Below, piece after piece: positions 364 to 62,942 of a DNA stretch of 64,000 bases. Position numbers and translations under genes: made by a program. The stretch lies in the sequence record PP886230.1; one strand, given 5' to 3'. Each line of letters begins with the position of its first letter. Positions within the stretch are counted from its first letter, which is position 1. The notes beneath the pieces are model-generated. The model saw only the letters and a program-made list of their open reading frames with translations. It was not told where the DNA came from and ran no database searches.

Positions 364-840
364 ATGATTCATGAACACCGAGGTAATCTGTTTGAATTAT
401 TCAGTACTGTAACAGATGATAAAACAGCAATACATATAATTGCTCATGGTTGTAACGCACAGGGTAAAATGGGTTCAGGTTTTGCAAAAGAGCTAAGAAA
501 TCGTTACCCAATGGCATATGATGATTATAAAGCATATGAAAAGGAAATGGGATTTCTTAGAATTGGACAAATTGCATATTCAGCAATTAACGATAATTTG
601 ATTATTGCAAACTGTATTACCCAAAAAATGTACGGTAATGACGGTGCTAAATATGTCAGTTATGATGCAATCGACGATGTGTTCAAACATCTAAATTATT
701 TTTGTAAAGTTGATCGAGATGTTCATGTACACTTCCCGAAAATTGGAGCCGATTTGGGCGGCGGTAACTGGAACGTTATCAAAGAAATCATTGATCACCG
801 ACTGGTCAATGCAGAAAAACACTTATACATTCTAAAATAA
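364..840 (+). CDS. macrodomain protein (Poa1p/T4 Tk.4-like ADP-ribose-binding family)
   Basis: GNLF...IAHGCNAQGKMGSGFAKELRNRYP, NCITQ..YG and FPKIGADLGGGNW match macrodomain motifs. Confidence 0.85.
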   Translation: MIHEHRGNLFELFSTVTDDKTAIHIIAHGCNAQGKMGSGFAKELRNRYPMAYDDYKAYEKEMGFLRIGQIAYSAINDNLIIANCITQKMYGNDGAKYVSYDAIDDVFKHLNYFCKVDRDVHVHFPKIGADLGGGNWNVIKEIIDHRLVNAEKHLYILK

Positions 841-859
841 ACAAAAGGACTTGACAAAA

Positions 860-1168
860 ATGACTATGACCGTTAAACTACTAAACATCAATAACATTGG
901 CCCAGTACTAGCAGTTCTTCAAACCGATTCTGCTGAAGCTGTTGTAGTTAACTACCCAGCACAACTAGGGACTGACGAAAATGGTGAAATCATTCTTCGT
1001 GATTATCTAGAGTTTGTTAGTATGGAGAAAAATGTTATTTTTTATAAATCCAACATTATTAGTGTTAGTGATGCAAACCCTGCATTAGTTGATGCTTATG
1101 TTGATGCTATTAAAGCAATCGAAAACACTCCAAAAGTTTTCGTTCCTGAGAATAAAATCATTCTATAA
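860..1168 (+). CDS. hypothetical protein, possible Sm-like fold
   Basis: AAGGA SD at 845-849 fits ATG 860; beta-rich pattern ending in P...L..AY resembles small Sm-like proteins of T4-like phages (weak). Confidence 0.5.
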   Translation: MTMTVKLLNINNIGPVLAVLQTDSAEAVVVNYPAQLGTDENGEIILRDYLEFVSMEKNVIFYKSNIISVSDANPALVDAYVDAIKAIENTPKVFVPENKIIL

Positions 1169-1180
1169 TAGAGGTATATA

Positions 1181-1558
1181 ATGGCTGCTAATGACGTTAA
1201 AGTAAAAACTATCCAAGCTATCGTAGTACTGAAAGATTCTACACCATCCCCTAAAGAATTAGTAATGGCTGGGATGACTATGTTACATCAATACAACCCT
1301 GAATCACCTAACTATGTTCAAGAATACGAAGCTAAGAAGTTTAAAGAACATTGGCAGTCATGGATTAAAGATAATGAAATGGAGCAGGTAGTATATGCTG
1401 CTGATGACATTTTCGAACTGGAACAAATTGAATATCTAGCTGGTCAACAATCAGTGCCATTGAGCATTTTCGGAAATGGTGAAGAAGTTCTGGTATTGGG
1501 ACCATTCACTGCTGATGATATCATTCACTTACTGAGTAATTGTAAGAAAATTGAATAA
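1181..1558 (+). CDS. divergent peptidyl-tRNA hydrolase 2 (Pth2)-like protein
   Basis: QAIVVLKD...W....EQVVY.A.D..EL.QI...A....VP..I.....VLVLGP...I..LL...K follows the Pth2 pattern; GAGG SD. Confidence 0.55.
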   Translation: MAANDVKVKTIQAIVVLKDSTPSPKELVMAGMTMLHQYNPESPNYVQEYEAKKFKEHWQSWIKDNEMEQVVYAADDIFELEQIEYLAGQQSVPLSIFGNGEEVLVLGPFTADDIIHLLSNCKKIE

Positions 1559-1774: not shown

Positions 1775-1819
1775 AGCACCTCTAAATAATGTATATAAAC
1801 ATTAATGAGGTGCTTTTTT
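1775..1819 (+). promoter_or_regulatory. late promoter TAAATA (1783-1788) inside an SD-sequestering hairpin
   Basis: agcacctc (1775-1782) is the exact complement of gaggtgct (1807-1814, contains SD); inner stem taatgt/acatta; T-run 1814-1819. Confidence 0.75.
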
Positions 1820-2611
1820 ATGTCTTACGATTATATGGGTGGAAACCCTGATGCTCCTAACTTTGACCATCGTGAAAAACTGAAAGATGTTATCACTCAA
1901 ATGTTGGGTGCTGGGGCCGTTGAGGTAGAAATTACTGATGGTCAATTAGAAATTGCAATTGATAATGCGGTATCGAATTACAGAGCGTGGAGTTCTGCTT
2001 CTAAAGAAGAAGCATTTTTAAATATGAAATTTTATGATTCACAATCTGTATATATGCTACCAACTGAAGTTGAAATTGTTAAAAAGATTTATCGTTATGG
2101 TAATGGTTACTTAAGTTCTGGTAGTGGGAACTCAGTAGACCCGTTTTCTCTAGCATTCACCAACACTTACTTATTGACTTCAGCACGAAATGCTGGTGGA
2201 TATGATCTAACTACATATGATTTTAGTTTTCAGTTCCAAGAACTGGTAGGTCGTATGTTTGGTCGTGATATTATATTTCAATTTAACCCAATGACCAAAA
2301 AATTAATTATAGATCGTGATATTCGAGGTACTGAAGAAGTACTATTACACGTGTATCATAATATTCCTGAACCATTGTTGTTCCAAAGGCAGCAAAGTTA
2401 TCCTTGGTTGCGTGATTGGGCTTTATCCGAAGCAATGATAATGTTGGGTCGTAACCGTGCTAAATTCGCATCGCTTCCTGGACCACAGGGAACGTTTTCT
2501 ATGGATGGTGATACCTTACGCAATGAAGGTTTACAGCTTCAAGAACAGCTTAAAGAGCGTTTGAAACGTTATCAAGATGGTGCTGAACCACTCGGTATGA
2601 TTATTGGCTAA
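1820..2611 (+). CDS. gp13: neck protein (head-tail adaptor), T4 gp13-like
   Basis: KLKDVITQMLGAGAVEVEITDGQLEIAIDNAV resembles the gp13 N-terminus; WLRDWAL...MLGRNRAKF...LPGPQG...DG motif; SD GAGG at 1807. Confidence 0.85.
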   Translation: MSYDYMGGNPDAPNFDHREKLKDVITQMLGAGAVEVEITDGQLEIAIDNAVSNYRAWSSASKEEAFLNMKFYDSQSVYMLPTEVEIVKKIYRYGNGYLSSGSGNSVDPFSLAFTNTYLLTSARNAGGYDLTTYDFSFQFQELVGRMFGRDIIFQFNPMTKKLIIDRDIRGTEEVLLHVYHNIPEPLLFQRQQSYPWLRDWALSEAMIMLGRNRAKFASLPGPQGTFSMDGDTLRNEGLQLQEQLKERLKRYQDGAEPLGMIIG

Positions 2612-2687: not shown

Positions 2688-2957
2688 ATGAATAATAACA
2701 TAAATGTAACGTATAACAGATATCGTTGTGGTAGACCAACGCTTGATTACGAATCAACTGAAAAGTACTGGAAATTTATCAAAGATTCAATCATTGATGT
2801 TATCGGTAGAGATCGAATAAATGCATGGGCGAGTATATATCGTGATGATGATGGGGAAACATTTTTTATTACTTATGTTTCTATATATTATGGTAATGAG
2901 TCAATTCTTGGATTACTTGAAAGTTTAGTAGGAAAGGATTTAATAGAAATTATATAA
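2688..2957 (+). CDS. hypothetical protein (89 aa)
   Basis: AAGGA SD, ATG, downstream of the extended -10 promoter. Confidence 0.6.
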   Translation: MNNNINVTYNRYRCGRPTLDYESTEKYWKFIKDSIIDVIGRDRINAWASIYRDDDGETFFITYVSIYYGNESILGLLESLVGKDLIEII

Positions 2958-2975
2958 AATACATGGAGTAGTATA

Positions 2976-3602
2976 ATGGGAAGACAAATAATTGCAATTA
3001 ACGGAACTATTGGAAGTGGTAAAGATACATTTGGTGAATCTTTTATTAATAATGGTTACACACGAATGTCATTCGCAACCAATCTAAAAGATTCAGTTGC
3101 TGCCATCTTTGGATGGGACCGTGAAATGCTTGAGGGGTCAACTAAGGAAAGTCGTAAGATTCGTGAAGAACCGGATCAGTACTGGTGTGATAAGTTAGGT
3201 CGTAATGATGTATCCCCTCGATGGGTATTGCAGAATTATGGTACTAATATTTTGCGTAAGTATTTTCATAATGATATTTGGGTATTCAGTTTAGAAAAAT
3301 CAATGCAAGACATAGATGGAAATATCATCATCACTGATTGCCGTTTTCCAAATGAATTAAAAATGATTAGATCGAATAATGGGACTATTATTGAAGTTCA
3401 ACGTGTTCTACCACATTGGTATGGTTTGGCTGCCTCTTATAATAAAGGGGATATTAATATTAAACCAGTTGAACTTGAATCAGTACACGAATCTGAGTGG
3501 GCTTGGATTGGAATAAACAATCCTGATATAATTGTACAGAATAACAGTACTATTGATGATTTACATAAAAAAGCAATGGACATTATTTATTCTAATACAT
3601 AA
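2976..3602 (+). CDS. gp1: deoxynucleoside monophosphate kinase (T4 gp1-like)
   Basis: P-loop GTIGSGKDT, SFATNLKD, SPRWVLQNYGT, ITDCRFPNE. Confidence 0.9.
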   Translation: MGRQIIAINGTIGSGKDTFGESFINNGYTRMSFATNLKDSVAAIFGWDREMLEGSTKESRKIREEPDQYWCDKLGRNDVSPRWVLQNYGTNILRKYFHNDIWVFSLEKSMQDIDGNIIITDCRFPNELKMIRSNNGTIIEVQRVLPHWYGLAASYNKGDINIKPVELESVHESEWAWIGINNPDIIVQNNSTIDDLHKKAMDIIYSNT

Positions 3603-3626: not shown

Positions 3627-3696
3627 ATTAAATCCTTCAATAAATAAGACTATACGAATATATTTCGAATAACCAATTATTTTTGGAGGATTTAAT
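3627..3696 (+). promoter_or_regulatory. late promoter TAAATA (3641-3646) preceded by an anti-SD arm pairing with the sheath SD
   Basis: attaaatccttcaa (3627-3640) pairs with ttggaggatttaat (3683-3696): 13 Watson-Crick pairs plus 1 G-U. Confidence 0.8.
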
Positions 3697-7442: not shown

Positions 7443-7463
7443 TTTTATTTAAACTTAATATAT

Positions 7464-7501
7464 AGCCTCGAATCTATTCGGGGCTTTTTTTATGCTAAAT
7501 A
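7464..7501 (+). terminator. intrinsic terminator followed by late promoter TAAATA (7496-7501)
   Basis: agcctcgaa-tcta-ttcggggct-tttttt, then gcTAAATA. Confidence 0.75.
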
Positions 7502-18035: not shown

Positions 18036-18041
18036 ATAAGT

Positions 18042-18069
18042 GGGACAACTTATAAAAATATGATATAAT
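18042..18069 (+). promoter_or_regulatory. pre-replicative promoter of the 16-bp family
   Basis: GGGACA-N16-TATAAT with TG extension; -35 flanked by the 10-bp inverted repeat ttttataagt/acttataaaa. Confidence 0.65.
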
Positions 18070-18103
18070 AGTTAATGTACCAATATACATGGAGAGTATT
18101 AAA

Positions 18104-22533: not shown

Positions 22534-22580
22534 TTAAATATTTCCTCAGAATAGATTTATATGATGTATTTATTTTAGTT

Positions 22581-22611
22581 AAAAGAAAAGGCCAAGCATA
22601 GGCTTGACCTT
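22581..22611 (-). terminator. intrinsic terminator
   Basis: aaggccaagc-atag-gcttgacctt with an A-run on + (U-tract on minus). Confidence 0.6.
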
Positions 22612-22617
22612 AAAAAA

Positions 22618-23397
22618 TTAACGTATACGTTCAGGAATATCAACACCTTCATATACCCAAGTTGCAGCTTGTTGTGCCTTATAAATTGCATCAGGATCTA
22701 AATCATCAACTGCATCAATTGCTGCACACTGATTGTCACATTCTGTAAACAATTGCTCAATCATAGCAAAGGCTCCAGTGTATAGTTGTGTCATTTCAGT
22801 AGCAGATAATTTTACAATTGCGTCATCAAGAAAAATAGAAACACTTTCAGAACCTGAAGTGACTTGTGTATAGTAATTAAGAAGCATTTGACGACCAGAC
22901 ATATCAGTACTGTAACGATGACCATTGAACATATAACCAGAATTCATACGATTTGTACGTTCTGATATAGTTCTTGCTTTTAAATCAACTTTAACATCTG
23001 CTATTGGCATATCAATATAATGATATGTTTTAAGAACAGTTAGTGCTTTATATTCTTCGGTAGCGTCTTCTAAAAATTCAACAATAGGTTGATTTTCATC
23101 TTTTAATTTAATAAACTCCAACGGTTGTTCAATAGCATTAACATTTCCAACATTTTTATACACTAACCACCAAAAACCTTCTTCTTTTCTAACAGCATCA
23201 TTAGGTTCTACTGGGGAACCATCTTTACTTGAAATACCATAAAGAGTTCTAATATCACTATAAAGATAACGATAGGTTTGTGGATCTTCTGGTGTTGCAC
23301 CAGGACGTTCTTTAAGTCCTTTTACACCAATTGGATTGGAAATAATGTTTCCCAATTCATAATTTTCTTTTGAATTTCCTTTCACATATGTGAACAT
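22618..23397 (-). CDS. tail fibre assembly-type protein (DUF4376-like C-terminus)
   Basis: RTNRMNSGYMFNGHRYSTD..GRQML...LSATEMTQL...I..LF......AAIDA pattern; directly downstream of the long fibre. Confidence 0.6.
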   Translation of the reverse strand: MFTYVKGNSKENYELGNIISNPIGVKGLKERPGATPEDPQTYRYLYSDIRTLYGISSKDGSPVEPNDAVRKEEGFWWLVYKNVGNVNAIEQPLEFIKLKDENQPIVEFLEDATEEYKALTVLKTYHYIDMPIADVKVDLKARTISERTNRMNSGYMFNGHRYSTDMSGRQMLLNYYTQVTSGSESVSIFLDDAIVKLSATEMTQLYTGAFAMIEQLFTECDNQCAAIDAVDDLDPDAIYKAQQAATWVYEGVDIPERIR

Positions 23398-37511: not shown

Positions 37512-39001
37512 TCTGTGTCCTTATGTATGCGATAAACAGTATTAGGTTTAACTGCGTCATGTAATGGAACTTTGTTATCACTATTTACAAACTGTGTAAG
37601 TGCTAAGTCTGCACCTTCCCACGGTTTTCTTCCACCATAATCAAAAATAACCCATGAATTCTTAGTTGCATTGAATTCCCATAACGTAACTGGAGTATAA
37701 TCGGTGCGATAGAAATAGTCACCATCTACTGCATCAGTTGGGAACATATTTCCTTCAGGGACTGTACCTCGTGCTGGTGGAATTTTAGGACGATAATCTT
37801 GTTGCGAATCAATATTACCATATACACAATTGGACGTGAATGGTTCATTGACATAAGTTACCTTTGGTTCCCCCCACTTGTCATCATTATACTGATAAAT
37901 GTGTGGTTCTTTATAAAAAATACAAAAATCTTCCACATCTTCTGGTGGAACATCACTGGTAGTATATTCTACATCACAATTTAACCATTTTTTAGCACTT
38001 TTATCATATTGATACAACGTATAACCTGTCACATCTGCGTCATTTTCTTTAAAGAAGAAGTCACCATCCATTGGTTTTATGGGAAAGATGGTTCCACGCT
38101 TGACTTCCACAGAAATCCATGTATCATTAACAAACTCTTTGAGTACTGGGTATGTTTTTTTCAAAAAATACATTCCATCGGCAGGTTCTTCTGGAAAATC
38201 ATAACCGTTAAGCATATATTTTGATAAATCTACTGTATCAGGTCGATCATCATACAAATGTTCATTTGTATAATGAATATAGGGTACTTCATCATCAGCT
38301 TGCATGATGATACGGTTCATGATATCCATTTCATTGCCATAGTTACTGTTTTCCGACGAACCATCATCGGTATTTCCATTACCATTATTAGGGTCATCTG
38401 GATTATCAGGATAATTATTGTTACCGAGTAAATCGGAGTACTCAGGTGAGTCGGTTAGCGGTTTAACTCTAAGTTTATAAATGTGATGTTGCCACGTAAC
38501 CGAGTATCCCTCAGATGTACGAAATGCATCTTGGACGACATAGAAGCGGTTTAGACCTGTATCTTTACCCAATACATCAAAATCACGTAAATTTGGTAGT
38601 TCTATCACATCCCCTGGCATGATTTTTCTACCTAAACGCTGCATCATTGTATTATAATGGATTGTGATGTCCATAGTGTTGAAATTAAAGAACAATCCTG
38701 GGATTTTCAAGTCTGGAGTTGCTTCTTGAACTTGATAGACACAACTAAGTGTGATAGCTTCAAGGTTGTAGTTTCTGTTTGGTGTGTCACCAAAAATTAA
38801 ATCGCCAATACTTGACACAACTGATCCTGAAGATGTATAATCACCTCCATAGGATAAGTCAGTGTTGTCAGCAACTTGTTTTGGACCGACATATGCATAA
38901 AGCCACATGTCAACTCCACCAATGTTGTATTGTTCAGCAATGGCAGAATCAATGAACTTGTAATCATTGGTTCTACCTTTTTTCCACATTCTATATGTCA
39001 T
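37508..39001 (-). CDS. gp14: neck protein (T4 gp14-like) with repetitive C-terminal extension
   Basis: DYKFIDSAIAEQYNIGGVDM, DLIFGDTPNRNY, LGRKIMPGDVIELP; FP..P.DG.YF repeats; GGAG SD favours ATG 39001. Confidence 0.75.
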   Translation of the reverse strand: MTYRMWKKGRTNDYKFIDSAIAEQYNIGGVDMWLYAYVGPKQVADNTDLSYGGDYTSSGSVVSSIGDLIFGDTPNRNYNLEAITLSCVYQVQEATPDLKIPGLFFNFNTMDITIHYNTMMQRLGRKIMPGDVIELPNLRDFDVLGKDTGLNRFYVVQDAFRTSEGYSVTWQHHIYKLRVKPLTDSPEYSDLLGNNNYPDNPDDPNNGNGNTDDGSSENSNYGNEMDIMNRIIMQADDEVPYIHYTNEHLYDDRPDTVDLSKYMLNGYDFPEEPADGMYFLKKTYPVLKEFVNDTWISVEVKRGTIFPIKPMDGDFFFKENDADVTGYTLYQYDKSAKKWLNCDVEYTTSDVPPEDVEDFCIFYKEPHIYQYNDDKWGEPKVTYVNEPFTSNCVYGNIDSQQDYRPKIPPARGTVPEGNMFPTDAVDGDYFYRTDYTPVTLWEFNATKNSWVIFDYGGRKPWEGADLALTQFVNSDNKVPLHDAVKPNTVYRIHKDTE

Positions 39002-39003
39002 GA

Positions 39004-39071
39004 TTGTCTCCAAAATAAATCGGGTATATCTTTATTTACCTTGTAGACAAACCGTAAGAATGTGATATAAT
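39004..39071. promoter_or_regulatory. bidirectional element: minus late promoter (39033-39038) and plus TAGACA-N16-TATAAT (39044-39071); anti-SD arm for gp14
   Basis: TATTTA-N5-TAGACA-N16-TATAAT; ttgtctccaa (39004-39013) versus ttgtagacaa (39041-39050) is a 9/10 inverted repeat. Confidence 0.7.
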
Positions 39072-51409: not shown

Positions 51410-51457
51410 TTTTGGACTCCATATAATTCGTTCATTCATTTGATTTATTTATGATAT

Positions 51458-51481
51458 AAAAAAGGCGTTCCGAAGAACGCC
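51458..51481 (-). terminator. terminator with C(UUCG)G tetraloop
   Basis: ggcgttc-cgaa-gaacgcc on + (UUCG loop on minus) with a U-tract on minus. Confidence 0.8.
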
Positions 51482-55017: not shown

Positions 55018-55047
55018 AAAAAGAAAAGCACTCCGAAGAGTGCTTTT
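55018..55047 (-). terminator. terminator with C(UUCG)G tetraloop
   Basis: aaaagcactc-cgaa-gagtgctttt; late TAAATA at 55009-55014 (minus) follows it. Confidence 0.8.
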
Positions 55048-62006: not shown

Positions 62007-62071
62007 TATTTATACGTGGGACAAACTGCTTTTTGGTGCTATAATAACATTGATGGTACAAGGATTGTACC
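62007..62071. promoter_or_regulatory. bidirectional element: minus late TATAAATA (62007-62014) and plus GGGACA-N16-TATAAT (62018-62045); leader hairpin 62055-62071
   Basis: TATTTA-N5-GGGACA-N16-TATAAT; ggtacaa-gga-ttgtacc. Confidence 0.75.
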
Positions 62072-62102
62072 TATTGGATTTAAACATGGAGAGTAAAATA
62101 CA

Positions 62103-62942
62103 ATGACAAATAGACCAAAGCGTAAAAAGTATCTCAATAATGCTGATTTACTTCGTGAAATACAAAAAAGTAAAATTTCATATTGCTGGTTATTAGACAA
62201 ATCATATAGTATGTATGATTATATTGTTTTTCATGAGTCAGAAATTACTGCTGAGTTACTAGAAAAAGCTAAGGCAGCCCGAATTAAACGACTGAACAAT
62301 GAAATGCTTGATAGTATTCGTGAAAAGGAAAATATGAGTGCTAAAAAAGCTAAAGAATATGCAGATGAACACAATTTAGTTATCACTGACGTTCCAATTG
62401 ATGAAGTTGTTATTCGTGTTATTACAGATGAACATATTCCACCAGATACTAGAGTTAACTTTGAACCATTCAAGCATTATATTGTAGATAATGAAGGTAT
62501 TCTCTATGAAGTTTGTCGTTCTCACTGGAAAGGCGACCTTGAAACTGGTGAATTCAGTACTGTTCATGGTAAAATTACAAATGAACTTGGGAAGATGTTC
62601 ATTAAACTTGCAGAGGAAATCTCACACAAATCTAATTACAGAAACTATACATACTTAGATGAAATGATGGGTGATGCAAGAATACAATTAGTTAAAAACG
62701 CACTTCTCTTTAAAGAGAGCATTCTTTATAAAAAAGATAAACCAGCAGTTCAGCTAAATCCTTTCTCTTACTATACATCATTCGTAAACAATAGTTTTCG
62801 TTCTATATTGAATAGTGAGAAAAATGTTCGAAATATACGTGATGATTTACTTGAAATGCATGGCTTTACGCCATCACATACACGTCAAATTGAAATTGAA
62901 TTGAACATGATTGAAAGGAAAAATGAAGATGGCTCTGTTTGA
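62103..62942 (+). CDS. gp55: late-transcription sigma factor (T4 gp55-like)
   Basis: YLNNADLLREI, LGKMFIKLAEEISHKSNYRNYTYLDEMMGDA, NPFSYYT....NSF..IL..EK. Confidence 0.85.
   Translation: MTNRPKRKKYLNNADLLREIQKSKISYCWLLDKSYSMYDYIVFHESEITAELLEKAKAARIKRLNNEMLDSIREKENMSAKKAKEYADEHNLVITDVPIDEVVIRVITDEHIPPDTRVNFEPFKHYIVDNEGILYEVCRSHWKGDLETGEFSTVHGKITNELGKMFIKLAEEISHKSNYRNYTYLDEMMGDARIQLVKNALLFKESILYKKDKPAVQLNPFSYYTSFVNNSFRSILNSEKNVRNIRDDLLEMHGFTPSHTRQIEIELNMIERKNEDGSV

Follow-up and report, generated by a model that had tools for sequence, protein, structure and literature searches.

A hairpin around a putative late promoter as a probable translational gate on the neck gene of RaK2-like jumbo phages

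Why should the Shine-Dalgarno (SD) sequence of a phage neck gene be mirrored exactly by a stretch of DNA a short way upstream, and why should a hexamer resembling a late promoter begin directly after that stretch? The first-pass annotation of this locus proposed a translation switch, in which RNA read through from upstream genes hides the SD sequence in a hairpin and RNA begun at the late promoter leaves it free. The locus lies in a window of 64,000 nt (the whole stretch of DNA that was analysed), which is 100% identical to positions 124001-188000 of PP886230.1, the genome of Escherichia phage vB_EcoM_E9.1 (E9.1 below). This is a 368-kb Asteriusvirus of the 121Q/PBECO4 type, a RaK2-like jumbo phage with E. 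coli as host. Positions are those of the window unless given as genome positions, and the features are collected in Table 1. The protein encoded after the hairpin matches PHROG 211 ('head-tail adaptor Ad2', E = 1.4e-41) and, in the PDB, the gp13 neck protein (E = 2e-4).

Table 1. Features of the neck-gene leader and of related elements, in window coordinates
Feature	Position	Strand	Remark
Macro-domain/phosphatase-like gene, hypothetical gene and 125-aa gene	364-1558	+	Non-structural
5′ anti-SD arm, AGCACCTC	1775-1782	+	CACCTC identical to 16S rRNA 3′ end
TAAATA, putative late-promoter core of the clade	1783-1788	+	Corresponds to T4 positions -11 to -6
Inner 6-bp stem (1787-1792 with 1799-1804) and 6-nt loop	1787-1804	+	RNAfold
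Predicted late transcription start, +1 at about 1794	1793-1795	+	From T4 geometry; last A of TAAATA is 1788
3′ arm, GAGGTGCT, with SD GAGGTG at 1807-1812	1807-1814	+	
T-run between stem and ATG	1814-1819	+	Possible intrinsic-terminator tail in this lineage
Neck gene start codon, ATG	1820-1822	+	
Neck/head-tail adaptor gene, 263 aa	1820-2611	+	Distant homologue of T4 gp13
Sheath-gene switch (predicted)	3627-3696	+	Arm 3627-3640, TAAATA 3641-3646, SD arm 3682-3696, ATG 3697
gp55-like late sigma factor, presumed reader of TAAATA promoters	62103-62942	+	PHROG 12791; PHROG 234

Read from the sequence, the two arms of the neck-gene hairpin are exact reverse complements. RNAfold (1765-1835) joins them in an outer stem of 8 bp, followed by an internal loop of 4 and 2 nt, an inner stem of 6 bp and a loop of 6 nt. 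The elements named in the first-pass annotation (perfect arm pairing, inner 6-bp stem, T-run, start codon, and a hexamer that directly abuts the 5′ arm) all proved exact in sequence and fold. The minimum free energy is -17.0 kcal/mol, compared with -6.96 ± 2.36 kcal/mol in dinucleotide shuffles (z = -4.25), and 0 of 200 shuffles were as stable; the energy of the arm/SD duplex is reached by only 0.07% of mismatched arm/SD combinations. The predicted late start is downstream of the 5′ arm, so that only transcripts begun before the arm would contain it; the inner stem extends the hairpin, and its 5′ half also lies upstream of that predicted start. A search of Rfam at the hairpin site matched no family. 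An in-frame ATG at 1805 was considered as the start of the neck gene and rejected, since it is lost in phage A4 and the annotated records all use 1820.

The 14 kb upstream of the hairpin hold only plus-strand, non-structural genes with sigma70-type extended -10 promoters (TGnTATAAT). Since these genes lie on the same strand and a terminator scan gave no terminator-like site between 1558 and 1775, their transcripts are predicted to read into the hairpin. TAAATA occurs also at 19-24 and could make some upstream transcripts late too. The nearest upstream genes had been described as macrodomain and Pth2 genes. The macro-domain/phosphatase-like gene stands; 'Pth2' comes only from the annotation of 1181-1558 (125 aa) as an aminoacyl-tRNA hydrolase in some other records, and this gene has no Pfam match, no PDB sequence match and a PHROG (14786) of unknown function. 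The TGnTATAAT motif is strand-biased over the whole genome, with 80 copies on the plus and 22 on the minus strand, and is often preceded by GTGGGAC(A) about 14 nt before it (examples at 2652, 3524, 18040-18075 and 62050-62085, and at genome positions 111956, 117739 and 123051). The motif probably marks the promoters of non-late genes, and the phage's RpoD-like sigma perhaps reads them. Phage CBB has an analogous motif, TGAAACG...TATAAT.

In Asteriusvirus a spacer of about 215 nt (1559-1774) separates the upstream gene from the hairpin; in other genera only about 50 nt lie between the genes. A sigma70-like TATAAT at 1755-1760 lies in this spacer, and transcripts from there would hold the entire hairpin. 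No PHROG matches the 39-aa ORF annotated at 1650-1769, and an unannotated ORF at 1551-1769 is not similar to the additional small gene that Hallingskeid carries in this place. Phage A4 and wastewater contigs are entirely different from E9.1 on the left side of 1775. These contigs are assembled Logan contigs from wastewater metatranscriptomes of a relative, in which transcript starts, ends and strand are invisible; they match from exactly 1775 on and differ upstream, which shows only that the sequence to the left of the hairpin module varies. On the other side of the neck gene, a homing/HNH-type endonuclease gene of about 665 aa follows directly in UE-S1, ph0011, K64-1 and RaK2, and is missing from E9.1.

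The neck-gene leader of E9.1 was compared with those of 17 other GenBank phages; a search of IMG/VR for relatives with the neck protein found none. Sixteen of the phages compared, E9.1 counted, are RaK2-like, and they include Asteriusvirus, Alcyoneusvirus K64-1/RaK2, Munch, Hallingskeid, EJP2, Mimasvirus GAP32/CBB/XbC2, Eneladusvirus pEa50/BF/Yen9-04 and XaC1. All 16, from at least five genera, keep the same order of elements: an arm, TAAATA adjacent to it or within 2 nt, a variable loop, and an arm that contains the SD sequence. The outgroups Vibrio phage 2.275.O and PA5oct do not keep this design. The arm and SD sequences change together between lineages, as CACCTC/GAGGTG, CACCCC/GGGGTG, ACCCC/GGGGT, TCCTC/GAGGA and CATCTC/GAGGTG (with a G-U pair), and most relatives also have an inner stem extension of variable sequence. 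Since MAFFT placed Munch two columns off, pairs were counted in a model-guided alignment, in which 92.9% of cells are paired and 4 of the 7 pairs show a compensatory change; such an alignment leans towards structure, and the raw sequences show the same covariation. The covariation score is 0.396, a value that none of 500 shuffles (0.195 ± 0.038) reached; sliding the partners gave no more than 0.12. Covariation in related phages had been put forward as a check on the switch, and it came out in its favour.

These comparisons bear on two other readings of the hairpin. Short inverted repeats are abundant in AT-rich phage intergenic DNA, so one might take the palindrome for a product of chance without function; the shuffles and mismatched combinations described above speak against this, and conservation across genera with compensatory changes effectively refutes it, leaving it scarcely credible. 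The stem might instead be the target of a protein or an RNase, as an RNase III site or the operator of a translational repressor, and not a gate that acts by itself. Phage leaders are often processed and the stem has an internal loop, as this would have it, but stems of 8 and 6 bp make a short substrate for RNase III. Among genera, arms and loop vary widely in sequence with only the SD pairing kept, which disfavours a sequence-specific protein operator, and the Rfam result gives it no help either. We consider such a target very unlikely.

If the hairpin is a gate, TAAATA should be a promoter. The genome has 226 copies of this hexamer and 600-756 copies of hexamers of the same composition, a depletion of about threefold. 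Fifty of the 226 lie 25-44 nt before an SD sequence and ATG (ORFs of at least 70 aa), compared with about 20-35 of 600-750 for control hexamers. Depletion elsewhere combined with enrichment at a fixed distance is the pattern expected of a strong promoter core. Within the window, TAAATA lies 28-37 nt upstream of the ATG in 14 genes, structural or unannotated, and is found ahead of no annotated enzyme gene. For phage CBB, MEME analysis of the regions upstream of structural genes gave ATAAATA as a putative late promoter, and Table S7 of that study lists the homologous neck site (Porf_201, CTAAATA...) and the sheath site as predicted late promoters (PMC5259590). The presumed reader of these promoters, the gp55-like sigma of E9.1, matches PHROG 12791 (E = 3e-154) and PHROG 234, 'late sigma transcription factor' (E = 8e-18), and has no PDB sequence match. 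Since a literature search gave no transcript mapping or expression data for RaK2-like phages, the promoter role of TAAATA rests on statistics and homology, by which it behaves as the late-promoter core of the clade.

With its two preceding bases the neck box reads TCTAAATA, which matches the T4 late promoter TATAAATA in 6 of 8 positions and so departs from the strict T4 consensus. In T4 this TATA box spans -13 to -6, and the late consensus of Aeh1 has C at -12 (PMC2988020). Among the 50 candidate promoters of the E9.1 genome, position -12 is A in 25 and C in 8, the neck site having C. By its sequence, the neck promoter would work like a T4 late promoter even though it is off the strict consensus, and the T4 spacing places its +1 at about 1794. 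No enrichment of C was found at -17 to -12 among the 50 candidates; the anti-SD arm is therefore no general feature of these promoters. At most of the other late promoters in the window a canonical terminator hairpin with a T-run comes first, directly followed by TAAATA and then the SD sequence, as at 7460-7500 and, on the minus strand, at 51415-51460, 55020-55045 and 22575-22625. The neck and sheath genes depart from this order in having the promoter within the hairpin.

We then compared, by thermodynamic folding, how easily the ribosome binding site (RBS, -14 to +3) opens in read-through RNA and in late RNA, the latter taken in the 16-phage comparison as starting 6 nt after TAAATA. In the 16 RaK2-like phages the predicted opening cost is 13.7-23.1 kcal/mol in read-through RNA and 2.9-6.5 kcal/mol in late RNA, values that take no account of co-transcriptional ribosome loading. 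The difference is 10.5-19.4 kcal/mol in 16 of 16; in the outgroups it is 3.4 (Vibrio phage 2.275.O) and 2.3 kcal/mol (PA5oct). For E9.1 itself the predicted cost of opening the RBS is about 14 kcal/mol when RNA reads through and about 3 kcal/mol when it begins at about 1794. The folding prediction agrees with the proposal that read-through RNA hides the SD sequence, for opening the SD alone costs 13.3-14.5 kcal/mol in the long RNA and 1.2-1.4 kcal/mol in RNA from starts at 1793-1795. The neck gene stands out within its own genome as well: over the 65 pairs of TAAATA and gene in E9.1 the median difference is 1.3 kcal/mol, and for the neck gene it is 10.9.

The same hairpin could act otherwise if TAAATA were inactive or the late start lay upstream of 1775. 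All neck mRNAs would then carry it, and it would damp translation and so set the amount of protein. The late start is predicted from T4 geometry and the box is off TATAAATA at two positions, as this reading would allow. However, 13 aligned relatives all have TAAATA at exactly this position between variable flanks, its distance of 29-38 nt from the ATG agrees with the genome-wide peak, and there is no other TAAATA within 90 nt upstream. A cost of 14 kcal/mol would moreover nearly abolish translation of a virion protein that has been detected in CBB particles (PMC5259590). We judge constant damping to be quite unlikely.

The hairpin might also serve mainly to end transcription of the upstream operon, as an intrinsic terminator, and overlap promoter and SD sequence only through genome compaction. 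The 8-bp stem with five G-C pairs is indeed followed by six T, and other late promoters of the window sit just after terminators. A T-run of at least five before the ATG is found in only 5 of the 357 SD-bearing genes of the genome, a rarity from which the run was probably selected at the neck gene, and runs of at least four occur in 12 of the 16 RaK2-like phages. In the others the run shrinks to one T (K64-1/RaK2), two (Hallingskeid) or three (EJP2), and the SD pairing is kept or is even longer. In K64-1/RaK2 a stem of 12 bp takes in the A and U of the start codon, yet no U-run follows it, which argues for translation, not termination, as the conserved function. The features of a terminator are present in E9.1 as stem and U6, but the loop is of 24 nt with an inner stem; at the neck site the ARNold annotation of phage G17 gives no terminator, and a consensus scan lists none. 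The related element at the sheath gene is without a U-run, and a terminator would not require its 3′ arm to be the SD sequence of the next gene in every lineage. A hairpin that is chiefly a terminator is thus unlikely. Some termination is plausible in Asteriusvirus, Mimasvirus and Eneladusvirus. The suggestion that the U-run may terminate upstream RNA is to that extent upheld, in that a T-run exists here, and is limited by the four phages named; judged by these sequences, the SD pairing would be the conserved property and termination at most a lineage-specific addition.

Translational gating, the reading that we prefer, would apply to more than one gene. At the sheath gene TAAATA comes directly after a 14-bp arm, and the SD arm directly before the ATG, with a duplex energy of -16.5 kcal/mol and no U-run. 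The arms, AATCCTCCAA and TTGGAGGATT, are conserved in all RaK2-like relatives checked, and because they are almost invariant there is only slight covariation. The sheath gene follows a small unit (2688-3602) that includes a dNMP kinase gene and has its own TGnTATAAT promoter at 2652. A small CGAATATTCG-like palindrome at 3655-3672, just past the predicted late start, is conserved in homologous sheath leaders and could form a stem-loop at the 5′ end of the late mRNA, with a role, for instance, in its stability. The Rz-like spanin gene (genome 109833) has TAAATA 27 nt before its ATG and a difference between long and late RNA of 11.0 kcal/mol (RBS opening 13.9 and 2.9 kcal/mol, respectively); its 5′ arm overlaps the promoter and pairs with the SD region, so that this gene probably has the same arm-promoter-SD design. 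In two further leaders TAAATA lies inside or next to a hairpin that sequesters the SD sequence: that of a PHROG 8113 gene of unknown function (genome 247518; difference 9.7 kcal/mol, 15-bp stem, T7 run) and that of a 193-aa virion structural protein (genome 235456; 7.4 kcal/mol). The difference is weaker, 6.4 kcal/mol, for a 497-aa virion protein gene on the minus strand at 39001. Here the arm TTGTCTACA ends 4 nt short of TAAATA, and its pairing partner, TGGAGACAA, is at the SD sequence (39001-39071); the intergenic region is bidirectional and shared with a ClpA-like protease gene. The leader of the terminase large subunit (8.5 kcal/mol) was rejected as gated, its hairpin being downstream of the promoter.

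Hairpins of this kind are established in T4. In gene e (McPheeters et al. 1986, reviewed in PMC3014915), a helix masks the SD sequence and AUG of early read-through RNA, and late promoters in the DNA that encodes the 5′ strand or the loop yield late RNA without the 5′ arm, which is translated. The RBS-sequestering class comprises T4 e, soc, 49, 25, 26, 39, I-TevI/II/III and segB, and Aeh1 mobE (PMC3014915, PMC2988022), and the precedents that had been invoked for the neck gene (e, soc and gene 49) are correctly cited by these sources. The neck element resembles gene e in an SD sequence predicted to be hidden in upstream-initiated RNA, a putative internal late promoter and a gp55-type sigma, and the predicted gating of the spanin, a lysis gene, would be analogous to that of e. 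It differs in belonging to RaK2-like jumbo phages, which have only distant T4 core homology, in a promoter core TAAATA with C at -12, in the U-run after the stem and in being known from sequence alone. With the other T4 genes and mobE it would share the setting of a late gene downstream of early or middle genes on polycistronic RNA, and an RBS masked by a hairpin whose formation requires RNA begun upstream. The gated genes of T4 and Aeh1 are mostly accessory, lysis and endonuclease genes, whereas the putatively gated RaK2-like genes include core virion genes (neck and sheath), and, unlike the T4 and Aeh1 cases, the neck element is conserved across several genera with covariation. Within its own genome it shares an identical layout with the sheath element, which is conserved in the same RaK2-like phages and differs from it in the 14-bp stem, the absence of a U-run, nearly invariant arms and a longer loop (d = 50 nt). 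With intrinsic terminators it has in common, in the E9.1 lineage, a G+C-rich stem followed by a U-run; the differences are a 24-nt loop that holds a promoter, a U-run that is not conserved, and a 3′ arm that is the SD sequence of the next gene. In the literature we found no prior description of such hairpins in RaK2-like phages. Since on every feature that can be checked in sequence the neck element appears to match T4 e, soc, 49 and I-TevI, we would place it in this established class.

On the comparative evidence, then, the main function of the neck hairpin is probably that of a cis-acting RNA gate of the T4 e/soc/49/I-TevI type. The switch first proposed for this locus is supported in that its elements are conserved, its arms covary and the homologous CBB site was independently listed as a predicted late promoter. 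Beyond the hairpin, its conservation and covariation, the TAAATA statistics and the predicted difference in accessibility, all of which we observe here, we infer where late RNA starts, when the upstream transcripts are made and that translation is actually blocked. Transcripts from the upstream non-structural block would carry 1775-1782, which would pair with the SD sequence at 1807-1812 in the -17 kcal/mol hairpin and block 30S subunits; in this lineage the U-run could also stop part of these transcripts just before the AUG. Host RNA polymerase with the phage gp55-like sigma would read TAAATA at 1783-1788, between the arms. Because the promoter lies there, late RNA starting at about 1794 would lack the 5′ halves of both stems and have its SD sequence free. 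Since only this late RNA would have a free SD sequence, synthesis of the neck protein would be coupled to the late promoter of this gene and shielded from transcription that comes in from upstream.

A wider proposal, which we offer tentatively as possible but short of probable, is that RaK2-like phages run a small, ancient regulon of such modules, arm, late promoter and SD sequence, on the neck, sheath and Rz-like spanin genes and at least two more. Synthesis of these proteins would depend strictly on the gp55-like sigma, and the set would have been kept since before at least five genera diverged. A module of about 45 nt would in some lineages combine three roles: it would terminate the non-late unit ahead of it, serve as late promoter and carry the gated RBS. 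The element may also serve phage engineering as a compact, portable 'promoter-dependent RBS' part. For the annotation of 121Q/RaK2-like genomes, the analysis offers a TAAATA core about 30-37 nt before the ATG, predicted late starts and a list of candidate gated genes. The mechanism itself is not new; the finding would extend a classic post-transcriptional device of T4 to core virion genes of a distant clade of jumbo phages, with phylogenetic support, in covariation across genera, that is unusually clean.
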